Source: Neoconidiobolus thromboides FSU 785
Lineage: Eukaryota > Fungi > Entomophthoromycota
DNA: 64,000 nt
Direction: 5' to 3'
Assembly (NCBI GenBank): GCA_025603075.1
Contig: MU626337.1
Coordinates: forward strand, 27,689-91,688
Each line of letters begins with the position of its first letter. The first letter of the stretch is position 1. Below the pieces are notes generated by a model. That model had not been told where the DNA came from and did not search any database. It saw only the letters and a program-made list of their open reading frames with translations. Both the position numbers and the translations under genes were made by a program. Shown piece after piece: positions 9,852-63,768 of the stretch.

Positions 9852-11036
9852 AGTACATTTTGTTTTTTACAAAAGCCACATAGTTATATATTGCCTTAAA
9901 CTCAAAGCCAGATAAATAAAAACCAAGTTTTCAATTCAACTGAATGCATTTAATAACTCTCTATTATTCTATACCCTACTCTCCTTCTTATCGAAAGCCT
10001 GTATATTAATGTTTGACTATTTTGTGAATATGAAAGCTTTAAATAAAATCCTGTATAACGTTAACTTCTCTTTAAAGTGTTTGAAGTATTTATATTAATA
10101 TTCATGAAAGTAGATTTTTTCATTACAGTAATTAATTTTTTGAAATAGCATAAATTTTAAAGCTTATCCTCTAAAAACTATAATTTTAATAAGTTACAAG
10201 GTAGAGCCTACTTTTTAGATCGACTTAAAAATAAAAATATTTAGATTTTAAATAAATAAATATAAATAAAAACAATATGTAGACAGAAGATCTACAACAA
10301 GAATTATTAGCATTCAAATAAAGTTATTCTTAAAGTATTGCCCTTTAATTTTAGTTCCAATTTCATATTTTAGCAAAATCATATATGGTTCTAAAAAAGC
10401 AAGTTATCATCATTTATTGTCAGTTTTAATAAAATCCGAAATATAGGATAAGCTATATAAAGAAAATACGAAAATATTTTATAAAGTGATAATTACATAT
10501 GGTATATTAATGTTGAAACTTACCAGTAACATTTTAAATGATCTTATGTCATATGCTCAATTAAAACATCATTTGAATATTGAATAATGAAAATGTCCTT
10601 AATCAAATACTGTAAAATTTGGCTAACTTTTAAAGATTGAAGAAATAGGCAAGCAAATTAGAAACATATAGTGTTTAAAATGATCATGTATACAAAATAA
10701 TAATAACTAGTATAATATATTTATTATAATTTTTTCATGATTGTCTTTACATTTATTACTTTTCAAAGTTTATAAAATATTTACTCAATCTTTATTATTT
10801 GCTAAATTTTATTCAATTCTAGGGAGGTCATATAGTTAAGATCACAATTTTTCCTAACACCAATCAAAATATATTGATACTTGTGACCTAGATTCTAATT
10901 GATCGTAAAATTTACGAATAAGACTTAGAGCAAAATATAACTGACTTGAATGAACCAAAACGTAACAAATTTTCTTCAAAAACTTAATTCAAACTAGTAA
11001 TTATATTAGCATCAAAAGTTATCAGTAGTAGTGACT

Positions 11037-13120
11037 ATGAGTGAAAAGAAAACAAGTAAACTGAAGACTTGGTTTGGAGGTGGGAAAGACAGTTCAAAAA
11101 AGAAAGAAGTAAGCTCTCTTCCGGTTAGAGCTAGTATCGATATGAGTAGAGAAAACTCTAGCAATAGCTCTGTTTCTTCGCCAAAATCAGGTCCCCACTC
11201 AGTTAAAAGCCCAGCATTATCGATAAGATCTACTGGAAGCTTCACTCAAGAGCCTAAGGCAGTTGAAGTTCAAAAATTAAAAAAAGGTACATAAATAAAT
11301 AAATTGATTTTAATTTTTGGAGTTAAGAAAATAATTTTCTAGATACACCAAGATCTCCCTTATCTAGCTCTTTCTCTGGAAATACCAATGGTTTTAAAAG
11401 TATATCTACAAAAACTAGTAGTAGTATAAAAAGCCCAGGACTAGCTAAAGTTTCTTCAATGGTAAATGATTTAAGCTAAGTGGGTCAATTAATTTATTCA
11501 AATTTAGGAAAAATTAAAAGGGTTGATGAATATTGGAGTAGGAAATAAGGAGGCGGCCAGGGAAAGAAGAGGAAGTTTAAGGAGTTTGAATGAATCCACA
11601 CCTTTGCAAAAATCGGTCACCCAACCATATATAAGTAAATCAGAGCAGGATTCTGGATTCCCAAAAAGTCCAAGTGTGGCTTCTTACAGGTCTAGTGTAC
11701 TAGTCGGAGACAACCAGGAGGTTAAAATGAAAGTCAATGAGCTTGAAAAAGGATATCAACAACTTAAAATGCATGTGAGTGCGATGGTATCTTTTGAAAA
11801 AGAGAATCTAGATGAGGCAGCCAAAATCCTTCAAAATGCTTTCAAAGCTTACAGAGTAATTAATTTAATGTCATATAATAGTCATTTATTTAGACCTTAT
11901 AAAACAGATTCGAAAATATTATTTATTAAGAAAAAATCACTTGCTCTATAATACTACTTTAGATCCACCTAACTTCTCTCATTTTGAAGAATATGCAAAT
12001 TCCGTACAGTTGTATAAGGGTAATTTACATTATAATTATACAATAGTGTTAAAGATGATTTATATATTTCAAATTACTAGGTGATAAAGATAGTGATCAA
12101 TATGAAGACAAAATAAAATTAATTCAACATACTGTTAGAGGATTTCTAATACGTAAACGCTTCAAACTGGTAATGACTTTTGACTTTTATGCCACAAAGA
12201 TTCAAGCCGCTTGGAGAGGATATCAAGTTCGAAATGTGAAGGCTGGGATTAGAATACCATTTTCAAAAATAATTAAAAGTATGGGGGCACAATCCTTGGC
12301 TACTAGAAAGCTTCAAGATGAAGTTACAGAGTTAAGAGAAGCAGTGAAAATATTAATAAACTCTGTTAATAGACAAAACGACTTGGCCAGTACTAATACT
12401 TTAAAATCCCCTTTAAAATCTAAAACTCTGTCTGTACCTCGTAAATCTTCCTTTTCCAATGAAAATAGCGTAAATTTACCAACTAAATCACCTTTATCAA
12501 CAAAACTTGTGGTTAAAGCTGGCGCTACTAATAAACCTCTTCGTAAGCCATCACTTCCATCCATTAATAATAATAATAGCAATGCCTCCAAACCTCCATC
12601 AACAACTAACAATGCATCCAAAAAAGAAAGTGGGAATATAAGTAAAGCTAAAGCTCCGCGTAAAGCCTCGATGTCATCTAACGATAGTTCAGGTAATAAG
12701 TTAGCTAATTCAGTTTTATCAAAGCCAAAAACAAAAACGCCTGACGAGCTTCCTAACATTGTAGAAAATAACAGGAAAGGAAGCGGGTTAGGTAATGAAA
12801 TCAAACCTGCTAAAACACTAGAAGGTATTCCTAAAGTAACAACACCAATTCCATTAGAAGATGAAGAAGGAGAAAGCACAGGTACTGTAGGTAAAAAAGA
12901 AGCAAGATCCTTTAAAAGAGGACATCAACCGCGTAGCTATAGTATGTCAAATAGTGAATTTAGATCTAGGTTGCCCCAGCCTGGTACTTTCGGAGCCAGA
13001 TTAGCAGAAAAGCTTGGAACTACTGTTGCTCCGGCATCCGAGAAGGAATATACTAGCTTGCTAGCAGAAGTAGATGCAGTGCGTTTAATGGTACAGGACC
13101 AATTGAAACTTAAACCATAA
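11037..13120 (+). CDS. IQ calmodulin-binding motif protein, about 5 exons, with long disordered Ser/Lys-rich regions
   Basis: GT-AG introns at 11287-11342 and 11462-11507 plus two more before about 12081 join the ORF fragments. Three IQ-like motifs: ILQNAFKAYR, LIQHTVRGFLIRK, KIQAAWRGYQVR. Confidence 0.75.
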
Positions 13121-45962: not shown

Positions 45963-47174
45963 CTAAGGGTAGGGTTTAAAATTAGTGATCGGGAATGTAT
46001 GTTCCATAACCTTATCGTTCTCAAATGCTCTACCATTATTTATTGGATCATTTTGATATATATAAGGGCTCTCGCTTGGTGGAATATTAATAGGAATGTT
46101 GATATTATATTGTTTTTCAAGCTTTATCCTTTCAAGTATCAACTCAGTGCGTTTGTACTCTAACTCAAGTTTTCTAATTGCTGCCCATTCTTTATGTTCC
46201 TCATGAGTTAAACGACGTGCCTCGGCTTCAGATTCTAATTGACTTTTGGCAAGTGCCATATAATCTTCATGGATTTTTTTACGATGAGCTAACTTACTTT
46301 CATAATAACCAGAACTGACATCGCTCTTGATAGCTTTTTCCACCCTTTCTGAAGCAGAAGTGTCTGTAGGTTTATCAGTAACATAATGTTGAGGCTCAGT
46401 GTTTATAAAATGAGTGTTAAGCTGGTGGTTAGCTTTACGACCGCGCCTACGACCAGGACCTTCTCTGAAAGTTGAATGTTCAGTTCCCTCGTTTTTAATT
46501 GTTACAATTTGTTCTCCATTTACTATTCTAGTTGTTGGAGAAGATCCTACACCTTCTTCATAACTACGAGCAAATGGCTCAGACTTGGCTTCTTGCTCAT
46601 AAGTTTCTGTACCATGAGTAGAGTAGGCATTTTTACTGGAAGATGGATTTAACTCTTGATCTAAAGGCTCAATATTCTCATTTTGGAAATTAAGTTCTGC
46701 TGGAGAACCAGAATAACTATTTTCATCTAAAGGAACAGGAAACGTACGAACTGCATCTTTGTCTGGATTTTGTAATGAAACGATTTTATCCATTTCATAA
46801 TAATAGCGGAAGATAGATTTGACTTTAGTTTGAGCTGTATCTATTCCAAGCGACAAATCACGTTCGGTGATAGGAATTCCTTGCTTAAGACGTAATTTAG
46901 TTGCTTGGTACTGACTTTCAAGGGAGTTCATTTTGTTATAGATCTGTCTGGAACTTTTTGAAGGGAGGAGCTCAGCTAAAGCTCTAATAGCTTTAGCTTT
47001 AATGCCAAAGTTATATAATTGAACATTACTTGGGTCTTTGAACCAATTAAAGAGGGTATCGATATCTTCATCTGACCACTTAGCACGTTCAGCAAACTGA
47101 CCGTTTAGGTTATCATTGGAAAGATACATATTAGTTGGTTTAGAATAAACTTGGGTGGTAGTTTCGTCGTCCAT
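45963..47174 (-). CDS. Myb/SANT-like (trihelix-type) N-terminal domain protein with a C-terminal coiled coil
   Basis: Intronless 403 aa; WSDEDIDTLFNW...QIYNKMNSLESQY...YYEMDKI resembles Myb/SANT-like domains; LELEYKRTELILERIKLE coiled coil. Confidence 0.7.
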   Translation of the reverse strand: MDDETTTQVYSKPTNMYLSNDNLNGQFAERAKWSDEDIDTLFNWFKDPSNVQLYNFGIKAKAIRALAELLPSKSSRQIYNKMNSLESQYQATKLRLKQGIPITERDLSLGIDTAQTKVKSIFRYYYEMDKIVSLQNPDKDAVRTFPVPLDENSYSGSPAELNFQNENIEPLDQELNPSSSKNAYSTHGTETYEQEAKSEPFARSYEEGVGSSPTTRIVNGEQIVTIKNEGTEHSTFREGPGRRRGRKANHQLNTHFINTEPQHYVTDKPTDTSASERVEKAIKSDVSSGYYESKLAHRKKIHEDYMALAKSQLESEAEARRLTHEEHKEWAAIRKLELEYKRTELILERIKLEKQYNINIPINIPPSESPYIYQNDPINNGRAFENDKVMEHTFPITNFKPYP

Positions 47175-50502: not shown

Positions 50503-50547
50503 TTATCAATAAAGATAAATTAATACTAGTAATATACTCATATAAAA
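50503..50547 (+). promoter_or_regulatory. TTATC-N6-GATAA inverted GATA pair plus TATA box of paralog A
   Basis: TTATC AATAAA GATAA at 50503-50518; TATAAAA at 50541-50547. Confidence 0.65.
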
Positions 50548-50581: not shown

Positions 50582-50974
50582 ATGAACAAATTTTTATTAA
50601 ATACCGTTGTTTTAGCTTTTATCGTTACCGTTTCTTCGCTTCCAGCATCAAGTGGTAATTACTTAGCCAAACGTGGCTTTAATTCTTTCTCTCCTTGCTA
50701 TGGATATGGCAGCGGTTTCAATAATTTCTATCCTGGCTATGGACTTGGTGGTTTTAATGGATATGGAGGATATGGAGGATTTAATAATTTTGGCTCGTTT
50801 GGCTTCCCAGGTGTAATTAATAATAATGCTTTCAATGCTAATGCTAATAACTTTAATGCACACGAGTTTGATCGTAATAAGGAGGCAGCTGTATTTGTTG
50901 ATAATGTACACAAAAACGATGTAAATGCCAACCATTTCAATGTTAATAAGCAAAATAATGCTGCTATCATCTGA
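50582..50974 (+). CDS. Secreted Gly/Asn/aromatic-rich small protein, paralog A
   Basis: Signal peptide, LAKR dibasic site, GYG/GGFN repeats, conserved C-terminal ...FDRNKEAAVFVDNVHK...AAII. Confidence 0.92.
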   Translation: MNKFLLNTVVLAFIVTVSSLPASSGNYLAKRGFNSFSPCYGYGSGFNNFYPGYGLGGFNGYGGYGGFNNFGSFGFPGVINNNAFNANANNFNAHEFDRNKEAAVFVDNVHKNDVNANHFNVNKQNNAAII

Positions 50975-51143
50975 GTTTGTTGTAAAACTTAAAAAATAAA
51001 CATTTAAACTTTAAAATCATTTCTATTACGTTTTTTGAATATTAGTGATTTTTAATATGAAATTCGTAAGTTCAAACATTATTATATACACTCTTAGTTT
51101 ACATAAAAAACAGAGTTCTTTAGGTTCAAAAAAGAAATATATA

Positions 51144-51229
51144 TATGTTTTTTTTGGCTTTACTTTTTCTATCTTTTAAGTGCTATTTGAGTAGAAAGAT
51201 GGAAAAAACAGAGCCAAAAGAACACCCTC
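51144..51229. mobile_element. Chimeric MITE copy 14 carrying two right ends
   Basis: About 55 bp of minus-orientation element switches at GAAAGAT into a plus-orientation right end GGAAAAAACAGAGCCAAAAGAACACCCTC, followed by ATAT. Confidence 0.7.
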
Positions 51230-51556
51230 ATATCTAATTCTATTCAGTAGATCAAAACCCTCCTACTATTTTACCATCGCCTCATCTGATCAGTATTATA
51301 AACAATTTCCAGGTTGACTCCAACTTGAAGTAGTCTTATTGTTTCTTCACTATCTCATCTACTTGATCTATCGAATCTTTATCAATTAAGGGATGTTTTG
51401 AATTTTTTACGTCAATAAAAGTATAATATAATAAAGCATCATTCTTTAATATCTTATGCTTTGAAGCTTTATTAGTATCAGCATTCGGTAGACACTTGTT
51501 ATATTTAACTATTTAATGATAGAAATTCAGTAATTTTACGACTTTGTTTAGTATTT

Positions 51557-51653
51557 AAGGATGTTTTCCTTGATTTTATCACTTTTTCCATTTTTCGAGT
51601 GTTGTTTGAATGGAAAGATTTAGTAAAATTTTTAAACAAAAAAATATATCCTC
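51557..51653 (-). mobile_element. MITE copy 15
   Basis: Diverged full-length copy; target duplication ATTT/ATTT. Confidence 0.82.
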
Positions 51654-51868
51654 ATTTTAACTCTTTATCAAATAACTAATACAACCATATAACACAAATT
51701 ACGATAAATTAAATTAGATACTGAATTTCATGATAGCTTGGCATTTAATGTCAAGTATTTGATATATTTAACACAATGAAAGTGAATAAAACAATACCAT
51801 TAAAAGTATCTAAATTGAAAGTTTAGTCGTTTTAATTAATGAGTTATTAATCAAGTTTGAAATTTCTT

Positions 51869-51912
51869 CTATCAATGTAGATAAATTAAGTTGATAATAT
51901 ACTCATATAAAA
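51869..51912 (+). promoter_or_regulatory. CTATC-N6-GATAA plus TATA box of paralog B
   Basis: CTATC AATGTA GATAA at 51869-51884; TATAAAA at 51906-51912. Confidence 0.62.
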
Positions 51913-51946
51913 AGAATGGGACAAATATTCAAAATAGCATCGAAAA

Positions 51947-52294
51947 ATGAACCAAATTTTATTAAATACCATTATTTTAGCTTTTGTTGCTACCATCTCT
52001 TCCGTTCCAGCATCAAGTGATAGTCGCTTATCCAGAAGAAGCTTCAACTCTTTTTATCCAGGTTATGGACTTGGTGGGTTTAATGGAGGGTATGGTGGAT
52101 TCAATAACTTTGGTTCTTTTGGATTTCCGGCTGTTATTAATAACAATGCTTTCAATGCTAATGCCAATCATTTCAATGCTAACGAATTTGACCGTAATAA
52201 AAAGGCAGCTGTATTTGTTGATAATGTACACAAAAATGATGTAAATGCCAACCATTTCAATGTTAATAAGCAAAACAATGCTGCTATCATCTGA
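51947..52294 (+). CDS. Secreted Gly/Asn/aromatic-rich small protein, paralog B
   Basis: Signal peptide, LSRR site, same conserved C-terminal domain as A. Confidence 0.92.
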   Translation: MNQILLNTIILAFVATISSVPASSDSRLSRRSFNSFYPGYGLGGFNGGYGGFNNFGSFGFPAVINNNAFNANANHFNANEFDRNKKAAVFVDNVHKNDVNANHFNVNKQNNAAII

Positions 52295-53952
52295 GTTTGT
52301 TGTAAAACTTAAAAAATAAACATTTAGACTTTAAGATCATTCTTATTATATCTCTCTTAAATATTGATAAGCTTCAAACTAAAATTTATAAATTTGAATG
52401 TTGACGCATTGAACAATTTTGGTGGGTTTATCAAGATCATATTTTCACTATCCCATACAAAAACTCAAATTAGTTAGTTAAGTAACCAGTTTGTTATTCA
52501 ACTTACAACTAAAGTTAATGGACATTTTAAAATTGTCTCAGAAAAGTAAATCAACAATTGTAGGAAAATAATGTTATCAAATTTGACTAGATTTACATTA
52601 AGCTTTATAAGTAAAAGGTACTTTTTAATTGATGAATTCTAGTAAAGAATTAGCACTAAAAATTTTATGCGTGTTTTTATGTTAGAATGAATACCTAATA
52701 ATAGTATAAAAAACTTTAAATTTTTATAACTTATAAAACATTAGCAAATATACAATGCAAAAATTATTACAAGAATCCTCTAATTAAGATAGAAAAGATC
52801 TTTTGATACAATAAAATAATCTAATGTCTATTTTTTATAGATTAAAAAGATAAAAAAAATTTTTTACGATTTAATTTATAAAATAAAAATTAGCCAATTG
52901 AAACTTTTATAATCTATTTGTATGAAAAATAAATTCTATACAACTAGACTCTATAAACTAGTTTTGTTTAAATATGATAAAAAGAAAGTAAATATTTTTC
53001 AAGCATCAATTTAGTGCAAAAATTTTCGCTGATTAATGTTGATAAATTTTAAGCATCTGTTTTCAAATCTTTGTAGCTGCAAATTAAACAATTAAATACA
53101 GTTATTTAATTGGCTAATTTACTTTACAGTGAACTTAGTAAAAAGATACTATGATTTTAGTAATTTCTATTTTTAATTTATCTATAAAAAGCAAATTAGT
53201 TTAAACTAAAAACTGAAGCAATACTTTAAAAAAGTATCAAAAAATCGCACGTCTATCAGATTTTAATATAACCTTATCTAAGAGTCTTTCTATACAGCCT
53301 TGGATTTAACTGCTAACTAATATAATCTAGTTATTTTGTCACTATTGTAACTACTCTATATAGCGATTCCATTTCTGTCAATAGACCTTTCGCATTTTAA
53401 AGTCAATAAAGTATCAATATGTAAAGATTCTCATAAATAATCTTATTTTTTAATGAAGAATCAGTTTTGAGAGTATACAATTGCAATGCTTGCATATTTT
53501 ACAAAATAATCTTTTTCTTACTTATAGAAACATTAGTTCTTGTAATCAATAATGTTTTATTTTTATTAATAAAAAAAACTAGGTTTTTTCATGAAAAGCC
53601 CTTGCAGTAAGGCCAATTTGTTATTAACTTATACTTTAGAGCTATGGTAGTACAAAGTGTTTGATATCCACTTACTATGCTTATTTATTTAATGACAAGA
53701 GTTTGGAAATTTTAGTAGTTATGTTTAACATTTTGACTCTTTATCACTTCACTAATATTATAGATTAATGGTTTGAGATAAATTAGATTATTTGATTTTA
53801 TGATGAGACTTGGCATTTACTCATAAATACGCTTAGCACATATACTATGATGGAAATAAACAAAGAATTTTATAATAGGCGTATAAATTGGTACTTTACC
53901 TATTTTAAATAAAAAACAATCTCTATTTACTCATCAAATTTATAACTTTAGT

Positions 53953-53997
53953 TTATCAATATAGATAAATCAATATCGGTATTTTAGGCATATAAAA
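53953..53997 (+). promoter_or_regulatory. TTATC-N6-GATAA plus TATA box of paralog C
   Basis: TTATC AATATA GATAA at 53953-53968; TATAAAA at 53991-53997. Confidence 0.65.
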
Positions 53998-54031
53998 AGA
54001 GGAAAATAAATCTTTAAAACATTATCAAAAA

Positions 54032-54445
54032 ATGAATAACTTCTTATTAAACACCATCCTTTTAGCCTTTACTGCTACTATTGCTTCACTTCCACCATCA
54101 GATGATGTTCATTTATCCAGAAGAGGTTTCGGCTCCTATCCAGGCTATGGGTTAAATGGTGGTTATAGTGGTTTAAACGCTGGCTCTAGTAATTTCTATC
54201 CTGGCTATGGACTTGGCGGGTTTGGTGGTGGATATGGCGGATATGGTGGGTTCAATAATTTTGGTTCTTTTGGTTTTCCAACTGTGATTACCAATGATGC
54301 TTTTAATGCTAATGCTAATAATTTCAATTTAAATGAGTTTGATAGTAACAAACAAGCAGCTGTGTTTACCGACAATGTTCATAGTAACAATGTAAATAGC
54401 AATAATGCTAATGTTAGTAAGCAGAATAGTGCTGCTATTATTTAA
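54032..54445 (+). CDS. Secreted Gly/Asn/aromatic-rich small protein, paralog C
   Basis: Signal peptide, LSRR site, duplicated YPGYGL unit, conserved C-terminus ending SAAII. Confidence 0.92.
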   Translation: MNNFLLNTILLAFTATIASLPPSDDVHLSRRGFGSYPGYGLNGGYSGLNAGSSNFYPGYGLGGFGGGYGGYGGFNNFGSFGFPTVITNDAFNANANNFNLNEFDSNKQAAVFTDNVHSNNVNSNNANVSKQNSAAII

Positions 54446-55131
54446 AAATGGTACAAATTGTTCTAGAATAAATACTCTACAGTTTGAACTTGCTTTCATT
54501 TGTTTTACTTCTATAAAAATTTAAATATTTTTGTATCTATATATGATTTTTTTCTAAATTAATAAAGCTATTTGATTTCTAAAATTTAGCTAAAGAAACT
54601 GTATTTTGTTATTTGCCATTTCAAATCCAATGACATTACAATTCTCTATAAAGTTATTAATATGTTCTATCTTCTGTTTTTTTTGGTATTTGATGCCCTA
54701 TATCAGCTATTTTAAAAATTCGAATTACAAACTGATACCAGTTACTGCTTCAATCATGATCTTTATCACTTGATTCCTGTATATTTGACAACAGGGAAGA
54801 TTAAACTTGAAGTTCTATTTAGATTTGGTATAGCTTCAACGCTATTGTTTACCCTTACAAAAGATTTATTGGAATAGTTCTAATACTAACATTACATATC
54901 GATATCAATATAATCTAAGTTTGTCATTTGGTTTCTTATTAATTTATCAAATTAAAACACTATTTTATTAGCTATCTTTTTTTACATTCATCTTTACTAA
55001 TAGATTAAATATCAATAACCATTTATCAACTTTGAATCATCATATAAAATCGTAAAAGATTAATTAATAAGTAGTAAAAAACTACTCATATAAAGCCAAC
55101 TAAATACTTTCTTAATGAAATATTCCCCTAA

Positions 55132-55560
55132 ATGTATAAATACATATCAACCATTCTTATTTTAACTTCCTCCACTATTATTTTATCTCATTCAACATTA
55201 CCTAAAACTTGCTTATTTAAACAAGTATTTACCACTTTTCCATCTGTTTTTGATATCGATGAATTTTCAAACATCCAATACAACAATCGACCTCATTCTA
55301 CTCCACCTATTTTCAATTTAAATAATAATTTTGGATGGGCTGGAACTAACACGGTTAAGACTTCTCCATCGAATTTCAATTCATGTAGCCTTCCATCTAT
55401 ATTTGATGACAGCTGTTTAAATGCTAATATAACTACTTTTCGCAAATATGAAAGTAACAAAAACAAAAAAGCAACTATATAAACTGATAATATTCATAAG
55501 AAAAATGCAGATAAGGAGAGTGATAATAATATTAAATTTGATGTTGCTATTATTATTTAA
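55132..55560 (+). pseudogene. Divergent paralog D interrupted by an in-frame TAA
   Basis: ORF stops at TAA 55480-55482 (KKATI*). The same frame continues TDNIHKKNADKESDNNIKFDVAIII* to 55560, matching the family tail (AAVF-TDNVH...AAII). Confidence 0.8.
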
Positions 55561-55875
55561 GTTTAATAGTTGAATTATATTTTAAAATAAAATAGGTTTT
55601 TAGAGACTTAATATTTGAGAGCTATTATACTTAACTTTTTATAAAATTAAATAATTTATACAAATTCATATAATCAACTTGTTGCTCTTTCTATTATAAC
55701 AAAAGTTATTATTTAAACTAAGATAAAATAAAAAATAGTCGTGAATTATTGAAACAAAACACAATTAAAAATTTAAAACTATCATTATTATTTCATTATA
55801 TAAAAGTATAAAAACCTTCGGAAAGCACTCTTAATAGTTTTCAAAATAAATAACGAAAAACCTATAAATTAATTT

Positions 55876-56617
55876 CTATTGATTGTTAGTAGAGTCCATA
55901 CCAGGTGGAGAAGGTGGGGCTTTTTGTATATGATTTAATAGCTGAAAACCTTTTTTAAACACCGGTTTAATTAAATTAACTTCAAACCTAGTCAAATTAT
56001 CCATTTGTAAATGAGAATCATTAATGGCTTCAATACCCTTTCTAATTTTACTTTGTCTTTGTTCTTGTATTTCTTTTAATAAATTTCGAATAATATTACT
56101 TTCTTTGATATCATCAGAAGCTCTGAAAATAAAATGATAAACCCAAACTAAAAAAATTATTAATGTTTGACTTACTTATCCAATAACATCTTTGATATTT
56201 CCATAAAATTCTCATTCATTTTGCTAAATGTAGGCTCTTCTCTTTCTTCAGCTAGCCTCTTTTTTAAACTTTCTAAATGTAAAGTTTATTTTTAATCCTC
56301 TTTTAATAATAAAATATTAGCTCTTACCAATCGATAACCATTCTGGGGGTACAATTGAGCACTTATTCTTACTCTTTAAAACTAAAGCTAATCCTAATGG
56401 TACTTTACTCCTAAACGGTGGTTTAAATGGGCCTATAGCACCCTTATTAAATTTAACTTAAAGCTCGATTTAATCCTATTATAAATCACCGACTTACCGA
56501 AGATAATTGTAATCGATCCATTTTGAATTTTGGTCTTATTTCTATCATCTTTATCTCACTTAGGTATTCCAATTCATCGAATTCTAATTCTCCTCGTTGT
56601 CGTTTTTGTAATGCCAT
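55876..56617 (-). CDS. PSF2: GINS complex subunit Psf2, multi-exon
   Basis: [11 protein letters not shown]...ELEYLSE, GPFKPP...[49 protein letters not shown]. Not in the ORF track. Confidence 0.92.
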
Positions 56618-56952
56618 TTCAAAAATTGAATTTTGTTTATTTTTTTTCAAATTGAGTCGTTTTTAATATCAGTCGCATTCACCAATAAACAGTTAGTAAG
56701 TAAATTAGCAAATAATAGTTATAGATTTTTGATTTAACTGGAAAGAATTCCATTCTAACATCTAATCCAATAAAACTACCCCATTATTAAATTTAGGTTC
56801 TTTGCTTAATAATATGATTTTAAAATATCAAAATATATAATAAACAAAAACGAGCGAGATATGAAATATGATGAAAAAGCAATAAAATTGAAAGCTGAAT
56901 AAACAAAAAACAATGATTCAATTAGCTTCATTTATTAGTGTAAAATTTCTTA

Positions 56953-57486
56953 TTAAACAAAAATAAACAGTTCATCCCCTTCAACAACATTTCCAAATAT
57001 TTTCAACTTATGGGGGGTTCTATCGCATTGTCCGTTATCCAGACTGAAGCACCTAATTAATTATTAATATTTAAACATTTAATTAATAGATTTAAAATAC
57101 CAAAAATGAGCAGGACATTTAATCTAGAAATTATAAAACATTAAAAACAGAGGTTTTTAGTTATCATAGAAATCTTACTGCAGTACCAAACTTAACCCCA
57201 AATTCTTCAATATCAATAAGTTTGCTTTTATATAACGGATATCCTTGGTGGGGACAAAACTAAATATTGCACTTTAATCTTCATTGATTTGTTTATTTGA
57301 GAAGTAAAATAATAATTCTCTATTACTTACCGCTTCCATTACTTTATAATCGTCATCTTGTTTAACTATCAATAACTTTAATATTCTATTATCTAGTCGT
57401 AATTCTGCTTTTTTATAAATTAATTTATTGCTATTTTGTTGAAAATTTTCAATTGTTGTTAAATAATATTTGGTCAATTCACTCAT
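56953..57486 (-). CDS. Small stand-alone Rieske [2Fe-2S] ferredoxin-domain protein, 4 exons
   Basis: Exons 57486-57331, 57259-57179, 57123-57101 and 57052-56953 splice to ...VMEA|FCPHQGYPL...GTA|IKCPAHFW|CFSLDNGQC...VEGDELFIFV*, giving CxH and CxxH ligand motifs. Confidence 0.88.
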
Positions 57487-57843
57487 TATTCTTTTTAATA
57501 AAAAATAGATTTTTAATTTGCATTGTCATTCTTTTAATTTTTAATTTCTAAATCCTATTTCCTTTTTAAAACTTAAATTTAATTATGACAAAAAAATTAG
57601 CAAAAAATGATCAAGTTTCTATAAAAGAAATCCCAACTTTAATTAAATAAAAAACAGGTGCTAATAAGAGGATAGAAGTTATAAAAGAAGAAATAGAGAG
57701 TCAAAAATAAATATTGGGGATAGGATAAATAAATACACATATTAAAGAATTAAAAAGAACACTTAAATAAGGTTTAAAAAAGGTTGGTACTTTTTCAACA
57801 TACTACACATCATCTATAAGAGTTGGAATCACTTAAATCAAGC

Positions 57844-59130
57844 CTATGGTTTGGTTTCAGATACATTATTACTTAAATTATTATTTGACATTAGATTCCA
57901 AATGGGTGGCAAAGAAAACTTTTGAGAGCGTCGATGATGAGATCTTAAAGTAACGTTGGATAAGATGGATTTTGATAATTGAGTTTCATTTCCAGTATTA
58001 TTGTTTGTTTCGTTAGCACCATTGTTTTCAGTATTGTTGTTACTTTCTCTCCTCCTCCTAGAGTTTAATAAACTTGAATGTAAATCTAACCAAGCATGAC
58101 TAATAGTATCGCCACCTTTACCAAATACAGAGGAGACTTTATTTAGTAATTGACGTTGTACTTTACTCTCCGTTTTAATTTGATTGGGGGTACCTTGTGC
58201 TGTTGAAGAGCTAAACTCGGAATCTGGACTACTATCTTTTAAAGTAGAACTAGGTGATGGACATTTAGTACTATTTTTACTATTTTTATCCTCTTTTAAA
58301 CTAGCCATGGAATGACGTAAAGATAAACTTGGATTAACTACTGTTTTTGAAGAACCCATTGAACTATTTGATAAACTGGATCTTAAAGATGGGGTTGATC
58401 TTCTACTTGATACTACAGATTTAGGGATCTGTTTGACTGATTTTTGTAAACCAACCTCTTGTTGAGGAAGATTATTACTAAAATTATAAAGTAATTTAAT
58501 ACCATTTTCTGGGAATACTTCCACCCACAAAACTTTACGTAAATGATTTCGATTTGGGGTTTGAGATAAAGAGCGGGTTAATTTACCATCCATAAATTCA
58601 ACAAATTCGCTCCAATGTTGTTTAGATACATATAATTGAAACCCTAAGAAAAATAATAATTCAACTTCCATCTTATTGATTTCTTCTACTTTAAAGAGTC
58701 CTTGACTAACTTGTGCCCAACTACGATTATGATAACAGTTATCATAAAGATATTTATAAGCTATAATTAAGGCGGCTAATAATAATCTATGAGGTGAGCT
58801 ATTGGTGCCTTTACAAGCTGGATGTTTTTGTTTTAATCTAATCAAATAGATCAAAGCTAAAAACAAAGTAGTGATAGAAGAATTGGTTCTTCTAATAACT
58901 CTATAAATGAATTCGTTTAAAGGCGGTAAACCACTCTTTTCAATCTGTTCAGGCTCACAGCCAAATAAATGATTGACAAATCTTTCTGCTAATGCAATAG
59001 CTACTAGTCGTAATTGTTTACGATCTTCATCACTTGTTATTATCTTTTCATCTAAATGGGCTGGGATGATTAATTCTAAAGCATTTGTGCTTGGCCTTGG
59101 GTTATTGTTACTATTTGATATTGATAGCAT
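57844..59130 (-). CDS. Pho85-type (Pcl/Pho80-like) cyclin with a long Ser-rich C-terminal tail
   Basis: Cyclin box LPPLNEFI..VIRRT...TLFLALIYLIRL...HRLLLAALIIAYKYLYDNCYHNRSWA...EINKMEVELLFFL. Confidence 0.92.
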   Translation of the reverse strand: MLSISNSNNNPRPSTNALELIIPAHLDEKIITSDEDRKQLRLVAIALAERFVNHLFGCEPEQIEKSGLPPLNEFIYRVIRRTNSSITTLFLALIYLIRLKQKHPACKGTNSSPHRLLLAALIIAYKYLYDNCYHNRSWAQVSQGLFKVEEINKMEVELLFFLGFQLYVSKQHWSEFVEFMDGKLTRSLSQTPNRNHLRKVLWVEVFPENGIKLLYNFSNNLPQQEVGLQKSVKQIPKSVVSSRRSTPSLRSSLSNSSMGSSKTVVNPSLSLRHSMASLKEDKNSKNSTKCPSPSSTLKDSSPDSEFSSSTAQGTPNQIKTESKVQRQLLNKVSSVFGKGGDTISHAWLDLHSSLLNSRRRRESNNNTENNGANETNNNTGNETQLSKSILSNVTLRSHHRRSQKFSLPPIWNLMSNNNLSNNVSETKP

Positions 59131-61922
59131 TCTTTCTTATATTGTATTATATTATTAAAAACACAAATTGTTGTAAATAATAAAAAGAGAAATGATAGAT
59201 TTGAAAATCAATTCGATGATTGTATTATATATAAAGCTTATATTCGATTTAAGGGGTCAAAATACTAATTTTAAATCAGAGTCATAAAACTAAAACTGGG
59301 GAAATAAGAATATACTGATAAAATAATAAGTAAGATTTAATTGAATATACTCTACTATCTAATCAAGTTTATATAACTAAAAAAATACGATCAAAGTTTA
59401 AAAAGAATAAAAAAATTTATTTTTCTATATTCACTTTTTTTATACTTAAATAAACATCTAACTTTTAGGTTAAAAATTACTAATTTCTGGTCGATTTCAA
59501 ACTCTCATTCTTGAAATTGAAACTTGAAATTTATATCCAAATCATCTAATTTGTATACTTTTATGCCTTTTGAAACTGACTTTTGATACTCAAATGCCTT
59601 AATCAGCTCTTGAAACTATGTAGCCATTTATCTATTTTTAGTAAATCTTATCAATCATAGCCAATCAAACCTCCAAAAGATACTTTTAGTTGATCTAAAA
59701 GTATCTGACTTCATTGGCTTAAAAGTATTTTTATTAACTAGAATTTATGCACTTTAAACTCAAAGTTACTTCAAATTTTCAATAACAAATAAAAGAGATC
59801 AATTAAGGTTAACTCTTTGATCTAATTGATAAAAATCAACTCATTGAAAGATCTACCACTTATCAGGCTGCCTCAGTTTAAATTTGAGTTCAAATTCTCT
59901 TGCAATTTAATTACTATTTAATCTATCTTAATCGCTTTTCTTTAAAAATCTACTTTCTTTTTTTAGTTATTTGTAACCACTAGCTTATCCATTTTTTGCC
60001 CGCTTTTTAATGGCTTATTCAAATTCAAATTGGATTTTAAAGATTTTCTTTTGACAACAACTATTACGACATGACTTGAAAAAAGGCTTATTAATTAAAA
60101 TTAAAATTGGAACACTGGATCATCTTTTCTCCATAGTTTTTTGGCCGAATCCCTGAATTAGTACTAATTTTTACAACACTCTATTGTTTGTCTTAACTAG
60201 TTTTAATTCATTAGCATAGTAAATTGGACTTTGTTTCATTATCATATCGCTATTCTTGACTAATCAAAAATTACATCATCCTTACTCTAAATTGAAATCT
60301 GGGTAAATATAACGTTAACTAAAACTTCATAATGACTGTACTCTTTTTGATAGCTCATCATTTGTTCATTTTATTCAATTTATGGCTATTATGAGTTAAC
60401 TAACTGTTTATTTGAGAGTAAGTATTTGACTAAAATTAATATCAATTTAATAATTAGGCTTTAAAAAAAGATTTCAACCAATTGTTTAATTATAAAAATT
60501 GCCACTAAATAAGTCAGTTTATTTGAATTAATTTAATATTAGTTATTGTTATTATTTATTTTAAATGCAAATTGGGCATTTTGGTTCTGTTTTAGTGAAT
60601 CCTGATTATTGCAAAATATCAGTTTTTATAGCTAGAAAATATAAAATTAAAAATGCCCAATCTACACTTAAAACATAAATGATGTTACGTAGAATTCATT
60701 TTGTTTTATTATTTTGTATTACTTTTAACTCAGTTTTAAAATTCATTTAGTAGTTTTATCTACTGCCATTTTGTTTAAATCCATTTTTAATATTTGAATT
60801 AACTAACATATTAAATGCCTAAACAAAGCTTTATCTTTAAGGACTTATATACTATTACTATTGAACATTTCGAAAATTCGATACACAATATTCCTTCTAT
60901 TACAAATACTTACAACACTATTATAACTTAAAAAAAGAATTTGGATCAAATATAGTTCAATGTGATTTATTAAAAAGATAAATGAAACTAAAAACTTATT
61001 TTTTAACTTCACTTACTAAAATGAAAATCTTAACCCCTTATAATATTCTAGTTCAAGTTTTAGGCTTAAGATTGAACCCTGTTTTGAAGAGCAAAAGATT
61101 CAGTAGTTAAAAAAAGTAATTTTCTGACCATGGTATTCAAATGTTGCACTTTAATTCAAGTTATGGATGTAAAAATAGGAGCTTAAGATTAAACAGGAGA
61201 CTGAATTTTCGGTTGATACATATTCGAGCCTTTTTTTAAATTGTTTTGGGATAGTGTCAGTGCTAGATTATTTCATGATAACTTAGAAGATAAATAATCT
61301 GATTAATTACATTTAATATGAAAGTTGTGACTGCTTTTCACTTGAATTTTAAAGATTAATTAAAATAATATTAGAAATTTCTCATTTTATTTTAATTTAA
61401 TATAAGAATATTAAGTAAAAAAATTATTTATAAATAACTGAGTTTATAAGCAGGATATTTTTTAACATGGATAATAATAAATTTAATTAAATTTTATATT
61501 ACAAGTAGTTGAAAAGTTTATCATGATTTTAAACTTGATTTCTCAGTTAGAATTCAATTATGTTTACAAAATTTCTATGACAATGTCCAAATCATGAAAA
61601 GCAGTGATGGAGTTATTTGCAATTAGATCTTTTATTGCTTTTGATTTCTAGTTATTTTTTTCTAGTATGAATTCAAGAATTCCAACTTTTCAATATTTTA
61701 AATTCACATAAAGAAATATTAATTACAAATTAAAAGCAAGCGATGATATGCAAAGCTATAAGTGGTTTTAATTGAATTTATTAATCAATTTCAAATTTTG
61801 CATTCAAATAAAATCGGAAAATAAAGGAGTTTCAAATTAAACAAACATATATTTTATTCAAAAAAAAAGAAAAATCTATTAAATTGTGAATGTGTTTATT
61901 CTTATACTAAACCTCAGTAAGG

Positions 61923-62387
61923 CTAAATAATAGCAACACTGTTATGTTTATTAACATTATTATTACTCTTATTGATATCTTTCTTATGAATATTATCAAC
62001 GAATACAGCTGCTTTTTTATTGCGATCAAACTGATGAGCATTGAAACTGTTAGCATTAACATTGAAACGATCATTATTGATAACATTTGGGAAACCAAAG
62101 GAGTTAAAGTTATTGAATCCTCCATATCCATTATTATAGCCCAAACCGGGAGAGTAATAATTGAAACTACGTCTAAACAAATTTGTATTTGTAGATAATG
62201 AACTATCTAATATATTTGGAAAACTTAAGGTGTTTAAAGTATTTAAACCATTATTACTATCATATTTATATTCAGTAGAATAGAAATTAAAATAGCGTTT
62301 AGATAATTGTTGTTGGTTAGAGGTTGGGATGGAAGTGATAGTAGAAACTAAAGATAAAAAGATAATACTTGGTTTGAATTTAGTCAT
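61923..62387 (-). CDS. Secreted Gly/Asn/aromatic-rich small protein, paralog E, with two dibasic sites
   Basis: Signal peptide, LSKR and LFRR sites, conserved C-terminus ending SVAII. Confidence 0.92.
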   Translation of the reverse strand: MTKFKPSIIFLSLVSTITSIPTSNQQQLSKRYFNFYSTEYKYDSNNGLNTLNTLSFPNILDSSLSTNTNLFRRSFNYYSPGLGYNNGYGGFNNFNSFGFPNVINNDRFNVNANSFNAHQFDRNKKAAVFVDNIHKKDINKSNNNVNKHNSVAII

Positions 62388-62422
62388 TTTTTAATAACTA
62401 TTCCAAGTCATTGATTCAGGGT

Positions 62423-62466
62423 TTTTATATTTACTAGTTACTAATATTATTTATCTTTTTTGATAA
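62423..62466 (-). promoter_or_regulatory. TTATC-N6-GATAA plus TATA box of paralog E
   Basis: TTATC TTTTTT GATAA at 62451-62466; minus-strand TATAAAA at 62429-62423. Confidence 0.62.
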
Positions 62467-62607
62467 AATAAAAGTTAAATTGATAAATAGAGTTAATTAT
62501 TAATTATAATAAAGATAATTAATGTAGTCTTAAAGTATTATTATTTGCTATTATATTTATCAAATTAAAGGTAATTTTATTTAATTATTATTTAATAAAT
62601 ACTAAAT

Positions 62608-62705
62608 GGGAATGTATTTTTGTATTTAAGAATTTTACTAACAAATTTTCTGCTCAAATAGCGCTTAAAAGATGGAAAAAGTAATGAAGCCAAAAAATCA
62701 TCCCC
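62608..62705 (+). mobile_element. MITE copy 16
   Basis: Near-consensus full-length copy; perfect target duplication AAAT/AAAT. Confidence 0.92.
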
Positions 62706-63302
62706 AAATGTTGTTATAAGATTTAGTAAAGAATCTACTTTATCACCAAGTACTTTGAGTTATGACATACTAAATTAATTCTATCTATTGTCAGAAGATT
62801 GAGAAAGTTTTAAACGTTTAGTAAAAAACAAAATTAATAATATAGCGTTAGTTATATTTAAATACTTTTTTTATAGTAATAAACAGATTCTTTATAATTT
62901 TAAATAATGTGAGTTTGATTTTAAATAGCCTTGTAAAGTTGCATAAATAAACTCATTAATCACCATTTTCTGAGTGTTTTATACTCAATATAATAAAATT
63001 TGAAAACTTTTGGATTTTTATTAATTTTTATTGAAATAAATTTAATTTATAAATACTTTTCTAATATATAGTAGCTTTTAAATTTACTAGGTAAGATGAT
63101 AAAACTATTAGTTTTTTTTAGATAAAGCTAACTAGCAAGTCTTTATAAGATACTAGTCTTTCCCTTATTTCCCTATTAAAAAGAACTTGTTTTAAAATCA
63201 AAAAATTGATGCCTTTTATAGTAAAGTTAAAAAGTTTCAATCTAAATACATGACGTGAAGCATCAAAAGCATGAAAGATTTAATATTCTAAATTTATAAA
63301 CT

Positions 63303-63383
63303 TAAAATAAAAATAAAATAAAAATAAAAATAAAAATAAAGATAAAAATAAAAATAAAAATAAAGATAAAAATAAAAATAAAA
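63303..63383. repeat. (AAAAAT)n microsatellite
   Basis: Read directly from the sequence, just downstream of paralog F. Confidence 0.85.
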
Positions 63384-63429
63384 AGGGTATTAGTTTCTAA
63401 ATCTTTTGTTCTAATAAATATGAGCTATA

Positions 63430-63768
63430 TTAAATAATGGCAACATTATCATGCTTATTAACATTAATATGCTTCTTATTGATATCCTTCTTGTGAACAT
63501 TATCAACGAATACAGCTGCTTTTTTATTACGATCAAATTCGTTCAAATTAAAGTTATGATTATTAGCGTGGAATCTGTTATTATTAATTACAGCTGGGAA
63601 ACCAAAAGAGCCAAAGTTATTGAATCCGCCATTAAACCCACCAACCCCATAGCCAGGATAGAAATTGTTAAAAGTACGTCTGGTTAAGTAACTATCACTA
63701 GAAGTTGGAAGAGAACAGATAGTAGAGGTGAAAGCTAAGATAATGGCGTTTAATAAGAATTGATTCAT
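63430..63768 (-). CDS. Secreted Gly/Asn/aromatic-rich small protein, paralog F
   Basis: Signal peptide, LTRR site, conserved C-terminus ending NVAII. Confidence 0.92.
   Translation of the reverse strand: MNQFLLNAIILAFTSTICSLPTSSDSYLTRRTFNNFYPGYGVGGFNGGFNNFGSFGFPAVINNNRFHANNHNFNLNEFDRNKKAAVFVDNVHKKDINKKHINVNKHDNVAII

Follow-up and report, generated by a model that had tools for sequence, protein, structure and literature searches.

Paralogs A to F of Neoconidiobolus thromboides belong to a Zoopagomycota family of Gly/Asn/aromatic-rich proteins with a predicted Kex2-type processing site

The genome of the fungus Neoconidiobolus thromboides FSU 785 contains a cluster of six related genes, here called paralogs A to F, whose products are rich in glycine, asparagine, and aromatic residues. 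The cluster is located in a 64,000-nucleotide stretch of contig MU626337.1 (assembly GCA_025603075.1, positions 27,689 to 91,688), which was analyzed at its full length and is referred to as the window. The locus raises the question of what these proteins are and what they do. The original prediction, which was made from the DNA sequence of the window, described them as secreted proteins that are processed by Kex2 and may form a functional amyloid or a surface coat. It is well supported by our results that the paralogs belong to an unnamed family, which is restricted to Zoopagomycota, real, transcribed, and selectively constrained.

Architecture of the proteins and the predicted processing site

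Paralogs A, B, C, E, and F are intact single-exon open reading frames (ORFs) encoding 112–154 residues, as determined from a listing of the ORFs at 49.5–64 kb of the window, and D is a broken copy (Table 1). The predicted set of five intact intronless paralogs and one broken copy within 13 kb was confirmed by the ORF listing and by tblastn. The intact paralogs are mutually 41–77% identical, with tblastn expectation values (E) of 1e-17 to 1e-37, and could be aligned over their whole length. Comparison of each paralog to the whole window by tblastn did not reveal copies beyond A–F. The elements that had been claimed to be shared, namely an N-terminal secretory segment, a propeptide ending with KR or RR, a variable Gly/aromatic region, and a conserved tail, were all seen in the intact copies. 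Their common layout consists of a hydrophobic N-terminus, the motif L-x-[KR]-R at residues 28–31, a Gly/aromatic/Asn stretch of variable length, and a 57-residue tail with many invariant positions.

The individual copies differ mostly in the segments preceding the tail. The pro-segment of A ends with LAKR (residues 28–31) and is followed by a Gly/Tyr/Phe/Asn arm and the Asn-rich 57-residue tail. The pro-segments of B and F end with LSRR and LTRR, respectively. The Gly arm of B is the shortest among the plus-strand copies, and the Gly/Tyr arm of C is the longest. In E, the KR at residues 30–31 and the RR at residues 72–73 enclose a 41-residue degenerate first module, which retains the sequence 'SFPNILD...', and a complete module follows. 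Paralog D, which is ~29% identical to the other copies, has lost both the dibasic site (K-Q) and the Gly arm. The reading frame of D is interrupted by an in-frame TAA at 55480–55482 and is then open to the family stop codon at 55558–55560.

The architecture was evaluated across the wider family described in the next section. Counts of architectural features refer to 79 aligned members, statistics of the processing site to 93 sites, and the count of tails free of dibasic pairs to 85 sequences. All 79 aligned members begin with methionine. Within the N-terminal 25 residues, the most hydrophobic ten-residue segment has a mean Kyte-Doolittle value of at least 1.6 in 78 of the 79 members and above 2.0 in 61 of them. 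Residues 3–17 of copy B form a helix in the model calculated by AlphaFold2. These properties make a secretory N-terminus, in the form of a predicted signal peptide, well supported.

A [KR]R site is positioned at one column of the alignment, just before the Gly/aromatic region, in 75 of the 79 members. Position P4 is occupied by leucine in 58 of the 93 sites and by a hydrophobic residue or proline in 89, position P2 by lysine in 76 and by arginine in 17, and aspartate never occurs at P3. The extended motif recognized by Kex2 comprises arginine at P1, lysine or arginine at P2, and leucine or an aliphatic residue at P4, and aspartate is disfavored at P3 (PMC8528282). The family site agrees with this motif and has been kept across three fungal subphyla. 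The last 60 residues of the proteins do not contain any dibasic pair in the 85 sequences. Proteins P0080, P0083, and P0087 of Linderina are composed of two complete modules joined by RKR, and the metagenomic proteins P0009 and P0011 contain two modules joined via KR sites. In paralog E and in the 185-residue protein L001-b of N. thromboides, a decayed first module has been kept between two dibasic sites. The two-module relatives with dibasic boundaries provide the strongest argument for processing. The predicted Kex2-type site is borne out at the level of sequence by its extended signature, its frequency among the members, and its location at module boundaries in relatives, which makes Kex2-type processing well supported. 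From these features, we infer the actual cleavage and the extracellular location of the products.

Secreted precursors processed by Kex2 are already known in fungi as a kind, and the family is similar to the K2PP and KEP proteins in its predicted signal peptide, short pro-segment predicted to be disordered, and L-x-K/R-R motif (PMC6339444, PMC7329392, PMC8528282). The feature by which K2PPs are recognized, KR or RR (or LxxR) that follows a short pro-segment within the N-terminal half, was found in 75 of the 79 members. Some of the relatives are KEP-like in that they contain two modules or repeated pro-peptides bounded by dibasic sites. In contrast to KEPs, paralogs A, B, C, and F have one dibasic site and one module each, whereas E has one complete and one degenerate module. 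The conserved ~57-residue Asn-rich tail behind a Gly/aromatic arm also distinguishes the family from the KEP and K2PP families, to which it has no sequence relation. The accessible part of the supplementary tables of the KEP survey did not contain the family motif; this survey covered Conidiobolus coronatus, Linderina pennispora, and Coemansia reversa. The family has no detectable relation to described Kex2-processed precursors or to repellents, and its architecture appears to be its own.

Table 1. Positions of the family genes and associated features. Coordinates are those of the window, except for the locus L006 of Coemansia sp. S146.
Feature	Position	Strand	Description	Evidence
Paralog A	50582-50974	+	130-residue pre-pro-protein	ORF listing and alignment
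Paralog B	51947-52294	+	115 residues	ORF listing and alignment
Paralog C	54032-54445	+	137 residues	ORF listing
Paralog D	55132-55560	+	broken divergent copy	tblastn and frame reading
Paralog E	61923-62387	-	154 residues	ORF listing and alignment
Paralog F	63430-63768	-	112 residues	ORF listing
Promoter module of A	50503-50546	+	TTATC-N6-GATAA inverted GATA pair, then TATAAA at -41	
Coemansia sp. S146 genes	L006:7854-9017 and 10794-11582		wall/capsule-related enzymes	

Range, conservation, and transcription of the family

Relatives of the paralogs were identified by profile searches, which covered 1.84 and 5.8 billion proteins. The first profile was composed of seven N. thromboides proteins and was scored against all 1.84 billion representative proteins. 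Its seven matches were the family itself, the protein KXN67819.1 of C. coronatus, a Cys-containing variant, and a few metagenome proteins. Two more iterations provided 27 and then 88 matches. Credible matches came solely from Neoconidiobolus, Conidiobolus, Coemansia, Linderina, Syncephalis, or metagenomes, and the iterated searches gave no credible relative outside Zoopagomycota, metagenome contigs aside. The matches outside these fungi, to a Gly-rich protein of Caenorhabditis and a shematrin-like protein of Daphnia, were borderline and compositional, with E of ~2e-3.

The genome of N. thromboides FSU 785 contains at least 11 family loci. The homolog K502DRAFT_346087 is located on another scaffold (locus L001), where a tandem pair encodes proteins of 112 and 185 residues, the longer of which has an extra segment bounded by KR...RR, as in paralog E. 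Loci L004 (8391–8861 and 10001–10441) and L005 (17–337) encode a subfamily that contains Cys and Trp. The pro-region of this subfamily is formed of three to four tandem repeats of ~17–19 residues ending with '...QSGIHRR', and the repeats could be released as small peptides in their own right. The tandem cluster of C. coronatus includes at least three copies and one decayed copy within 15 kb; a gene for a secreted trypsin-like protease is positioned among them (L003:16956–17755). Dozens of members belong to many Coemansia species, of which Coemansia sp. RSA 2424 alone has eight named genes, and further members were found in Linderina macrospora, L. pennispora, and Syncephalis fuscata. In Coemansia sp. 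S146, three copies are located within 4 kb (locus L006); they are interleaved with a gene for a CAP59-type mannosyltransferase and adjoined by a GH16 glucanase gene (Table 1). These neighbors are a possible hint of a wall context at one locus. Scaffold JAHLTZ010000016.1 of S. fuscata carries two identical family copies in inverted orientation ~14 kb apart (L008 and L009), which looks like a recent inverted duplication.

Because low-complexity sequence can fake homology, a profile-profile comparison with a shuffle control was made. A profile of N. thromboides sequences only was aligned to a profile of Coemansia sequences only by hhalign with a probability of 97% and E of 1.2e-10 over 89 colinear columns, which extend from the pro-site to the C-terminus. 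The score of the real profiles was 61, compared to at most 20 in forty column-shuffled controls. Pairwise BLASTP of copy B against a Coemansia member was not significant (E of 7.4), and the proposed homology across Zoopagomycota is based on the profile searches and comparisons together with the shuffle control rather than on pairwise BLASTP. The Coemansia loci have a GC content of 47% and still keep the Asn-rich tail; therefore, the composition is not just a consequence of AT bias.

The family is unnamed, as had been proposed. All relatives are annotated as 'hypothetical protein', and Pfam searches with the window copies and the 79 members found nothing for the tail and weak compositional matches on the Gly arms alone. 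A sequence profile search of the PDB did not provide a match at E up to 1. No description of the family was found in the literature searched, and a search on glycine-rich proteins of the Conidiobolus secretome did not yield a paper.

Codon comparisons indicate that the tail is under strong purifying selection. The ratio of non-synonymous to synonymous substitution rates (dN/dS) of the tail is 0.05–0.29, with dS of 0.6–2.4 for most pairs (Nei-Gojobori method, 57 codons). The signal and pro region evolves faster, with dN/dS mostly of 0.2–0.6. The near-invariant positions of the tail across the family include the proline of G-F-P, the F-D of N-E-F-D-R-N, one alanine, two asparagines, and the hydrophobic C-terminal end. 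Tails of the Kickxellales (Coemansia and Linderina) are ~11 residues shorter than those of the Conidiobolus type. Judged from the alignment, the conserved unit of the family is the tail.

The 3' ends of A (50883–51022) and B (52203–52342) differ at two positions in ~140 nucleotides, and the flanks of both segments have diverged. The tract comprises the last ~30 codons and ~50 nucleotides of the 3' untranslated region and is gene-conversion-like. The L001 pair (10001–10339 and 11293–11850) exhibits the same pattern, with dS of 0.03 in the tail and 0.76 in the signal and pro region. Gene conversion thus appears to make a local contribution to the similarity of the tails in A and B and in the L001 pair.

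RNA contigs that are colinear with the genome and contain 0–1 mismatches across 300–450 nucleotides cover A, B, C, D, and E. The intergenic DNA of the cluster is without RNA contigs, short repeat elements excepted. The sequencing runs differ in origin: X9 is a culture run under the organism label of the genome, X5, X6, and X8 were filed under another, very heavily sequenced species label, and X10–X14 were filed under a third label, with X10 representing a strain that is ~2% divergent. Contigs of A have 0–1 mismatches over ~310–330 nucleotides (runs X9 and X5). A contig of C from run X5 is colinear over 449 nucleotides without a mismatch, and C therefore does not contain an intron. Paralog C is the copy best represented in RNA, and seven runs hold 55–97% of its sampled words. 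Contigs of B are present in X5 and X10, and none in the culture run X9. The contigs of D have low depth (3.5 in X9 and 7.1 in X5), as do those of E in X5, X6, and X10, and F is represented by just one partial, possibly chimeric contig in X5.

The depth of the family contigs relative to that of the neighboring cyclin gene varies among the runs. In X9, the depth is 15–22 for A and C versus 62 for the cyclin, and B, E, and F were not seen. In X10, the depth is ~90–450 for A–C versus 8–19 for the cyclin. In X5 and X6, the family genes alone were assembled within ~11 kb, and there is no contig on the cyclin gene. Runs X5, X6, and X8, which belong to three studies, contain near-identical family transcripts with 85–97% of the sampled words of C. 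It seems that N. thromboides or a close strain was present in these samples, and that the family was among its most visible transcripts. The values suggest that expression of the family is condition-dependent and sometimes high, contig depth being a crude measure.

The promoter module of A contains an inverted GATA pair ~20 bp before the TATA box. The same type of module is positioned upstream of C (53953–53968) and E (62451–62466, minus strand), and B has a near-match. For most family genes of N. thromboides and C. coronatus, the upstream region contains 4–6 GATA cores in 300 bp, versus a background of 1.2–1.5. The arrangement of the motifs points to a putative control of the family by a GATA factor.

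The GC content of ~26% throughout the window favors codons for Asn, Phe, Ile, and Lys, and no fold is predicted for the monomer, as could be expected if the genes were non-functional low-complexity ORFs that occur by chance in an AT-rich genome. However, such ORFs would not be expected to have the low dN/dS of the tail, colinear homologs in genomes with 47% GC, transcripts, and a shared promoter module. The chance origin is counted as refuted by the conservation and transcription.

The range of the family also bears on the possibility that the proteins are effectors or toxins that an insect pathogen directs at its host. Both N. thromboides and C. coronatus are insect-infecting fungi, the C. 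coronatus cluster contains the trypsin-like protease gene, and near-identical transcripts occur in the RNA runs filed under the other, heavily sequenced species label. The nearest language-model neighbors in the ESM Atlas are Gly-rich cuticle and chorion proteins of arthropods, at scores of at most 0.76, which are below the level that the tool calls informative. However, Coemansia and Linderina have the most members, S. fuscata has the family too, and the core module is conserved across the lifestyles of these fungi. Of these genera, Coemansia and Linderina live as saprobes and Syncephalis as a mycoparasite; none of them infects insects. Because the saprobic Coemansia and Linderina carry many copies, a role specific to insect infection is very unlikely.

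Unrelated genes at 55.6–61.9 kb, including that of a Pho85-type cyclin (57844–59130, Pfam PF08613), split the cluster. The ORFs of at least 110 residues around the cluster correspond to GWT1, a protein with a weak sub-threshold match to Sec3, the cyclin, and a 403-residue ORF. The 403-residue ORF (45963–47174, minus strand) is located ~3.4 kb upstream of paralog A and has no Pfam match. As had been noted originally, enzymes tailoring peptides that are synthesized ribosomally and modified after translation, or other peptides, are absent among these ORFs, a listing from which spliced genes could escape. Short elements similar to miniature inverted-repeat transposable elements are positioned between the paralogs (51145–51200, 51620–51655, and 62606–62697) and draw very many RNA contigs. 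The contigs derive from elsewhere in the genome, with a summed depth of ~7000 and loose ends on both sides. The elements are dispersed transcribed repeats outside the family transcripts.

Composition of the predicted mature peptides

The predicted mature peptides are 63–106 residues long, with a mean of 77 residues and a mass of ~8 kDa. On average, they contain 18% Asn, 19% Gly, and 17% aromatic residues, and their grand average of hydropathy (GRAVY) is ~-0.3. The median isoelectric point of 75 predicted mature peptides is 4.7 and their median net charge is -2; within the window, only those of B, E, and F are basic. The Gly/aromatic arm is highly variable in length and comprises only ~10 residues in Linderina. 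Segments of the arm such as G-F-N-N-F-G-S-F-G resemble the aromatic-Gly segments of FG-nucleoporins and hnRNPA1, which form reversible gels. This resemblance may serve as a lead but is not a test.

The mature parts had been described as essentially Cys-free. This is nearly so in the window, where the copies contain 0–1 Cys, with one in the mature part of A, but it does not apply to the wider family, which is often Cys-rich. The Coemansia members and the Cys-variant of N. thromboides have 2–9 Cys with CGGC-type spacing. The accompanying claim that the proteins are not hydrophobins stands. Hydrophobin identity was rejected for the window copies given their Cys content and the absence of a hydrophobin Pfam match among the 79 members, and for the Cys-rich relatives since their CGGC-type spacing is without the paired-CC pattern C..CC..C..C..CC..C. 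Strict hydrophobin candidates occur in one of six Zoopagomycota genomes surveyed (preprint 10.1101/2022.08.19.504535).

The composition can be compared to that expected of diffusible bioactive peptides, which would be released by Kex2 and directed against other microbes, as antimicrobials or in competition. The family consists of small predicted secreted pro-peptides whose genes form multi-copy tandem clusters and whose N-terminal arm changes fast. In Pfam, it matches GRP and the 'Fungus-induced' peptide family of nematodes weakly and by composition. Gly/Tyr-rich antimicrobial peptides that are cut at dibasic sites are known in nematodes and arthropods. However, most of the predicted mature peptides are acidic, whereas membrane-active peptides are typically cationic, and the net positive charge by which cationic Gly-rich antimicrobial peptides are recognized is not found family-wide. 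Furthermore, conservation is highest in the Asn-rich tail, which is under strong purifying selection and does not resemble a diversifying warhead, and there is no signal of an amphipathic helix or strand. The antimicrobial alternative, which was part of the original prediction, is weakened by the acidic character of the peptides, and we consider a bioactive function of this kind unlikely.

A candidate extracellular material of Zoopagomycota

We propose that the signal peptide would take the pre-pro-protein into the secretory pathway, and that a Kex2-type convertase would cut it after L-x-[KR]-R, removing a pro-segment of ~10–30 residues. The same convertase would part the modules in the two-module relatives. 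The cut would release a peptide of ~8–11 kDa, composed of the variable Gly/aromatic arm, with Cys too in relatives, and the conserved Asn-rich C-terminal module with the motifs G-F-P-x-V ... N-E-F-D-R-N ... A-A-V-F and a hydrophobic end. The tail would serve as the module for assembly or anchoring, whereas the aromatic/Gly arm would be a variable 'sticker-spacer' region. The peptides may act extracellularly as self-associating or wall-associated structural material, such as a coat, matrix, or adhesive of hyphae or spores. We favor this function tentatively because of the composition, the tandem dosage, the conserved unfolded tail, and the lack of cationic character, and because its carriers are fungi that differ in lifestyle but all form aerial spore structures. 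The data support membership in the family, a secretory N-terminus, the cleavage motif, the selection acting on the tail, and transcription; extracellular assembly is what we infer beyond them. It is doubtful that, more specifically, a phylum-wide functional-amyloid or hydrogel coat is assembled from the Asn-rich module as its unit, with the Kex2 cut as the switch that frees an assembly-competent peptide.

Several results weigh against a structural material. The AlphaFold2 model calculated from the 79-sequence alignment has a mean predicted local distance difference test (pLDDT) score of 50 and contains the helix of the signal peptide only, without beta structure. For a two-module Linderina protein, likewise modeled with a family alignment, the pLDDT is 48 and secondary structure is absent. 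In the ESM Atlas, the model reaches a pLDDT of 0.33, and its structural neighbors have template modeling scores below 0.5. The conserved tail is predicted to be unfolded as a monomer. A two-unit repeat in the tail (A-V-x-x-x-N ... N-A-N-H-F-N) has p-values of 0.009–0.03 relative to shuffled sequences in A, B, and C, but does not reach significance in E, F, Coemansia, and C. coronatus (p-values of 0.24–0.83). The repeat offsets of 26 and 28 have z-scores of ~2.1–2.6, uncorrected for multiple tests. The hydrophobic moment at a repeat of 180° is not above that of shuffled sequences, and the GRAVY of ~-0.3 together with the missing amphipathic moment is unlike that of a hydrophobin-like amphiphile. 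The contig depth that suggests high expression is a poor measure of it. Finally, a conserved unfolded tail equally fits a peptide that binds a ligand or receptor.

Two structural ideas were dropped. A two-rung Asn ladder has marginal support in A, B, and C and none elsewhere, and an amphipathic beta-strand does not agree with the moment at 180°. The N-x-N spacing is mildly enriched, with a mean z-score of 1.7 for sequences that are not independent. None of the computations produced a solenoid or an amphipathic sheet, and intermolecular assembly is invisible to single-chain prediction.

A conserved tail that is predicted to be unfolded would also be expected of a secreted signaling peptide, autocrine or developmental, that folds on its partner, with the tail as the receptor-binding part. 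The two-module precursors and the RR-bounded pro-repeats of relatives are similar to the KEP class (PMC6339444, PMC7329392), and the apparent expression varies among samples. However, the product of ~8 kDa and 63–106 residues is far larger than known fungal peptide signals, and a contribution of the Gly/aromatic arm to signaling is not obvious. The gene numbers, at least 11 loci in N. thromboides and eight named genes for Coemansia sp. RSA 2424, and the apparently high transcript levels suit a bulk material better. A signaling function is improbable.

The proposed structural material can be compared with known surface proteins. The Ustilago repellents are a precedent for Kex2-type processed peptides that form surface amyloid: the secreted precursor Rep1 of Ustilago maydis is cut within the secretory pathway to yield 11 Cys-free peptides, which form amphipathic amyloid fibrils on aerial hyphae (PMC3133707). 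The family resembles Rep1 in its predicted secretion and cutting, and its host fungi also make aerial spore-bearing structures. Unlike Rep1, the family has one or two modules per precursor, and amphipathicity was not detected in it. There is no detectable homology to Rep1, and no basidiomycete protein was found in the profile searches of 1.84 and 5.8 billion proteins.

Plant GRPs, arthropod cuticle and chorion proteins, and shematrins resemble the family in having a signal peptide, a small size, and arms of the GYGG type, which in Coemansia include Cys. The chorion proteins of silkmoths have Gly/Tyr/Cys arms and a conserved central domain, which assembles into beta-sheet material. The likeness to all these proteins is compositional only, and the Asn-rich tail has no counterpart in them. 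The Pfam family GRP (PF07172) matched seven of the 79 members, with the best E of 1e-4, via the Gly arms only, and none of the window copies. The family is also similar to curli CsgA, Asn/Gln-rich amyloids, and HET-s in that it is predicted to be secreted, rich in Gly, Asn, and aromatic residues, and unfolded as a monomer. However, curli and HET-s have clear repeated rungs, whereas the repeat seen here is marginal and does not extend to the whole family, and the models contain no solenoid.

The surface and matrix proteins of zygomycete fungi are little known, and hydrophobins, the coat of aerial structures in Dikarya, seem to be rare in Zoopagomycota. If the Asn-rich module were the unit of a coat, the coat of Zoopagomycota would do the job of hydrophobins or repellents in aerial growth, at the spore surface, and in spore adhesion. 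The family merits an entry in Pfam or InterPro, and its promoter and predicted processing site are well defined for experiments. Its strongly conserved yet predicted-disordered domain is a useful case for the study of sequence-encoded assembly. The family is multi-copy, transcribed, strongly constrained, and common to insect pathogens, saprobes, and a mycoparasite, which makes it a concrete candidate for the missing surface biology of Zoopagomycota or else a new class of secreted peptides.

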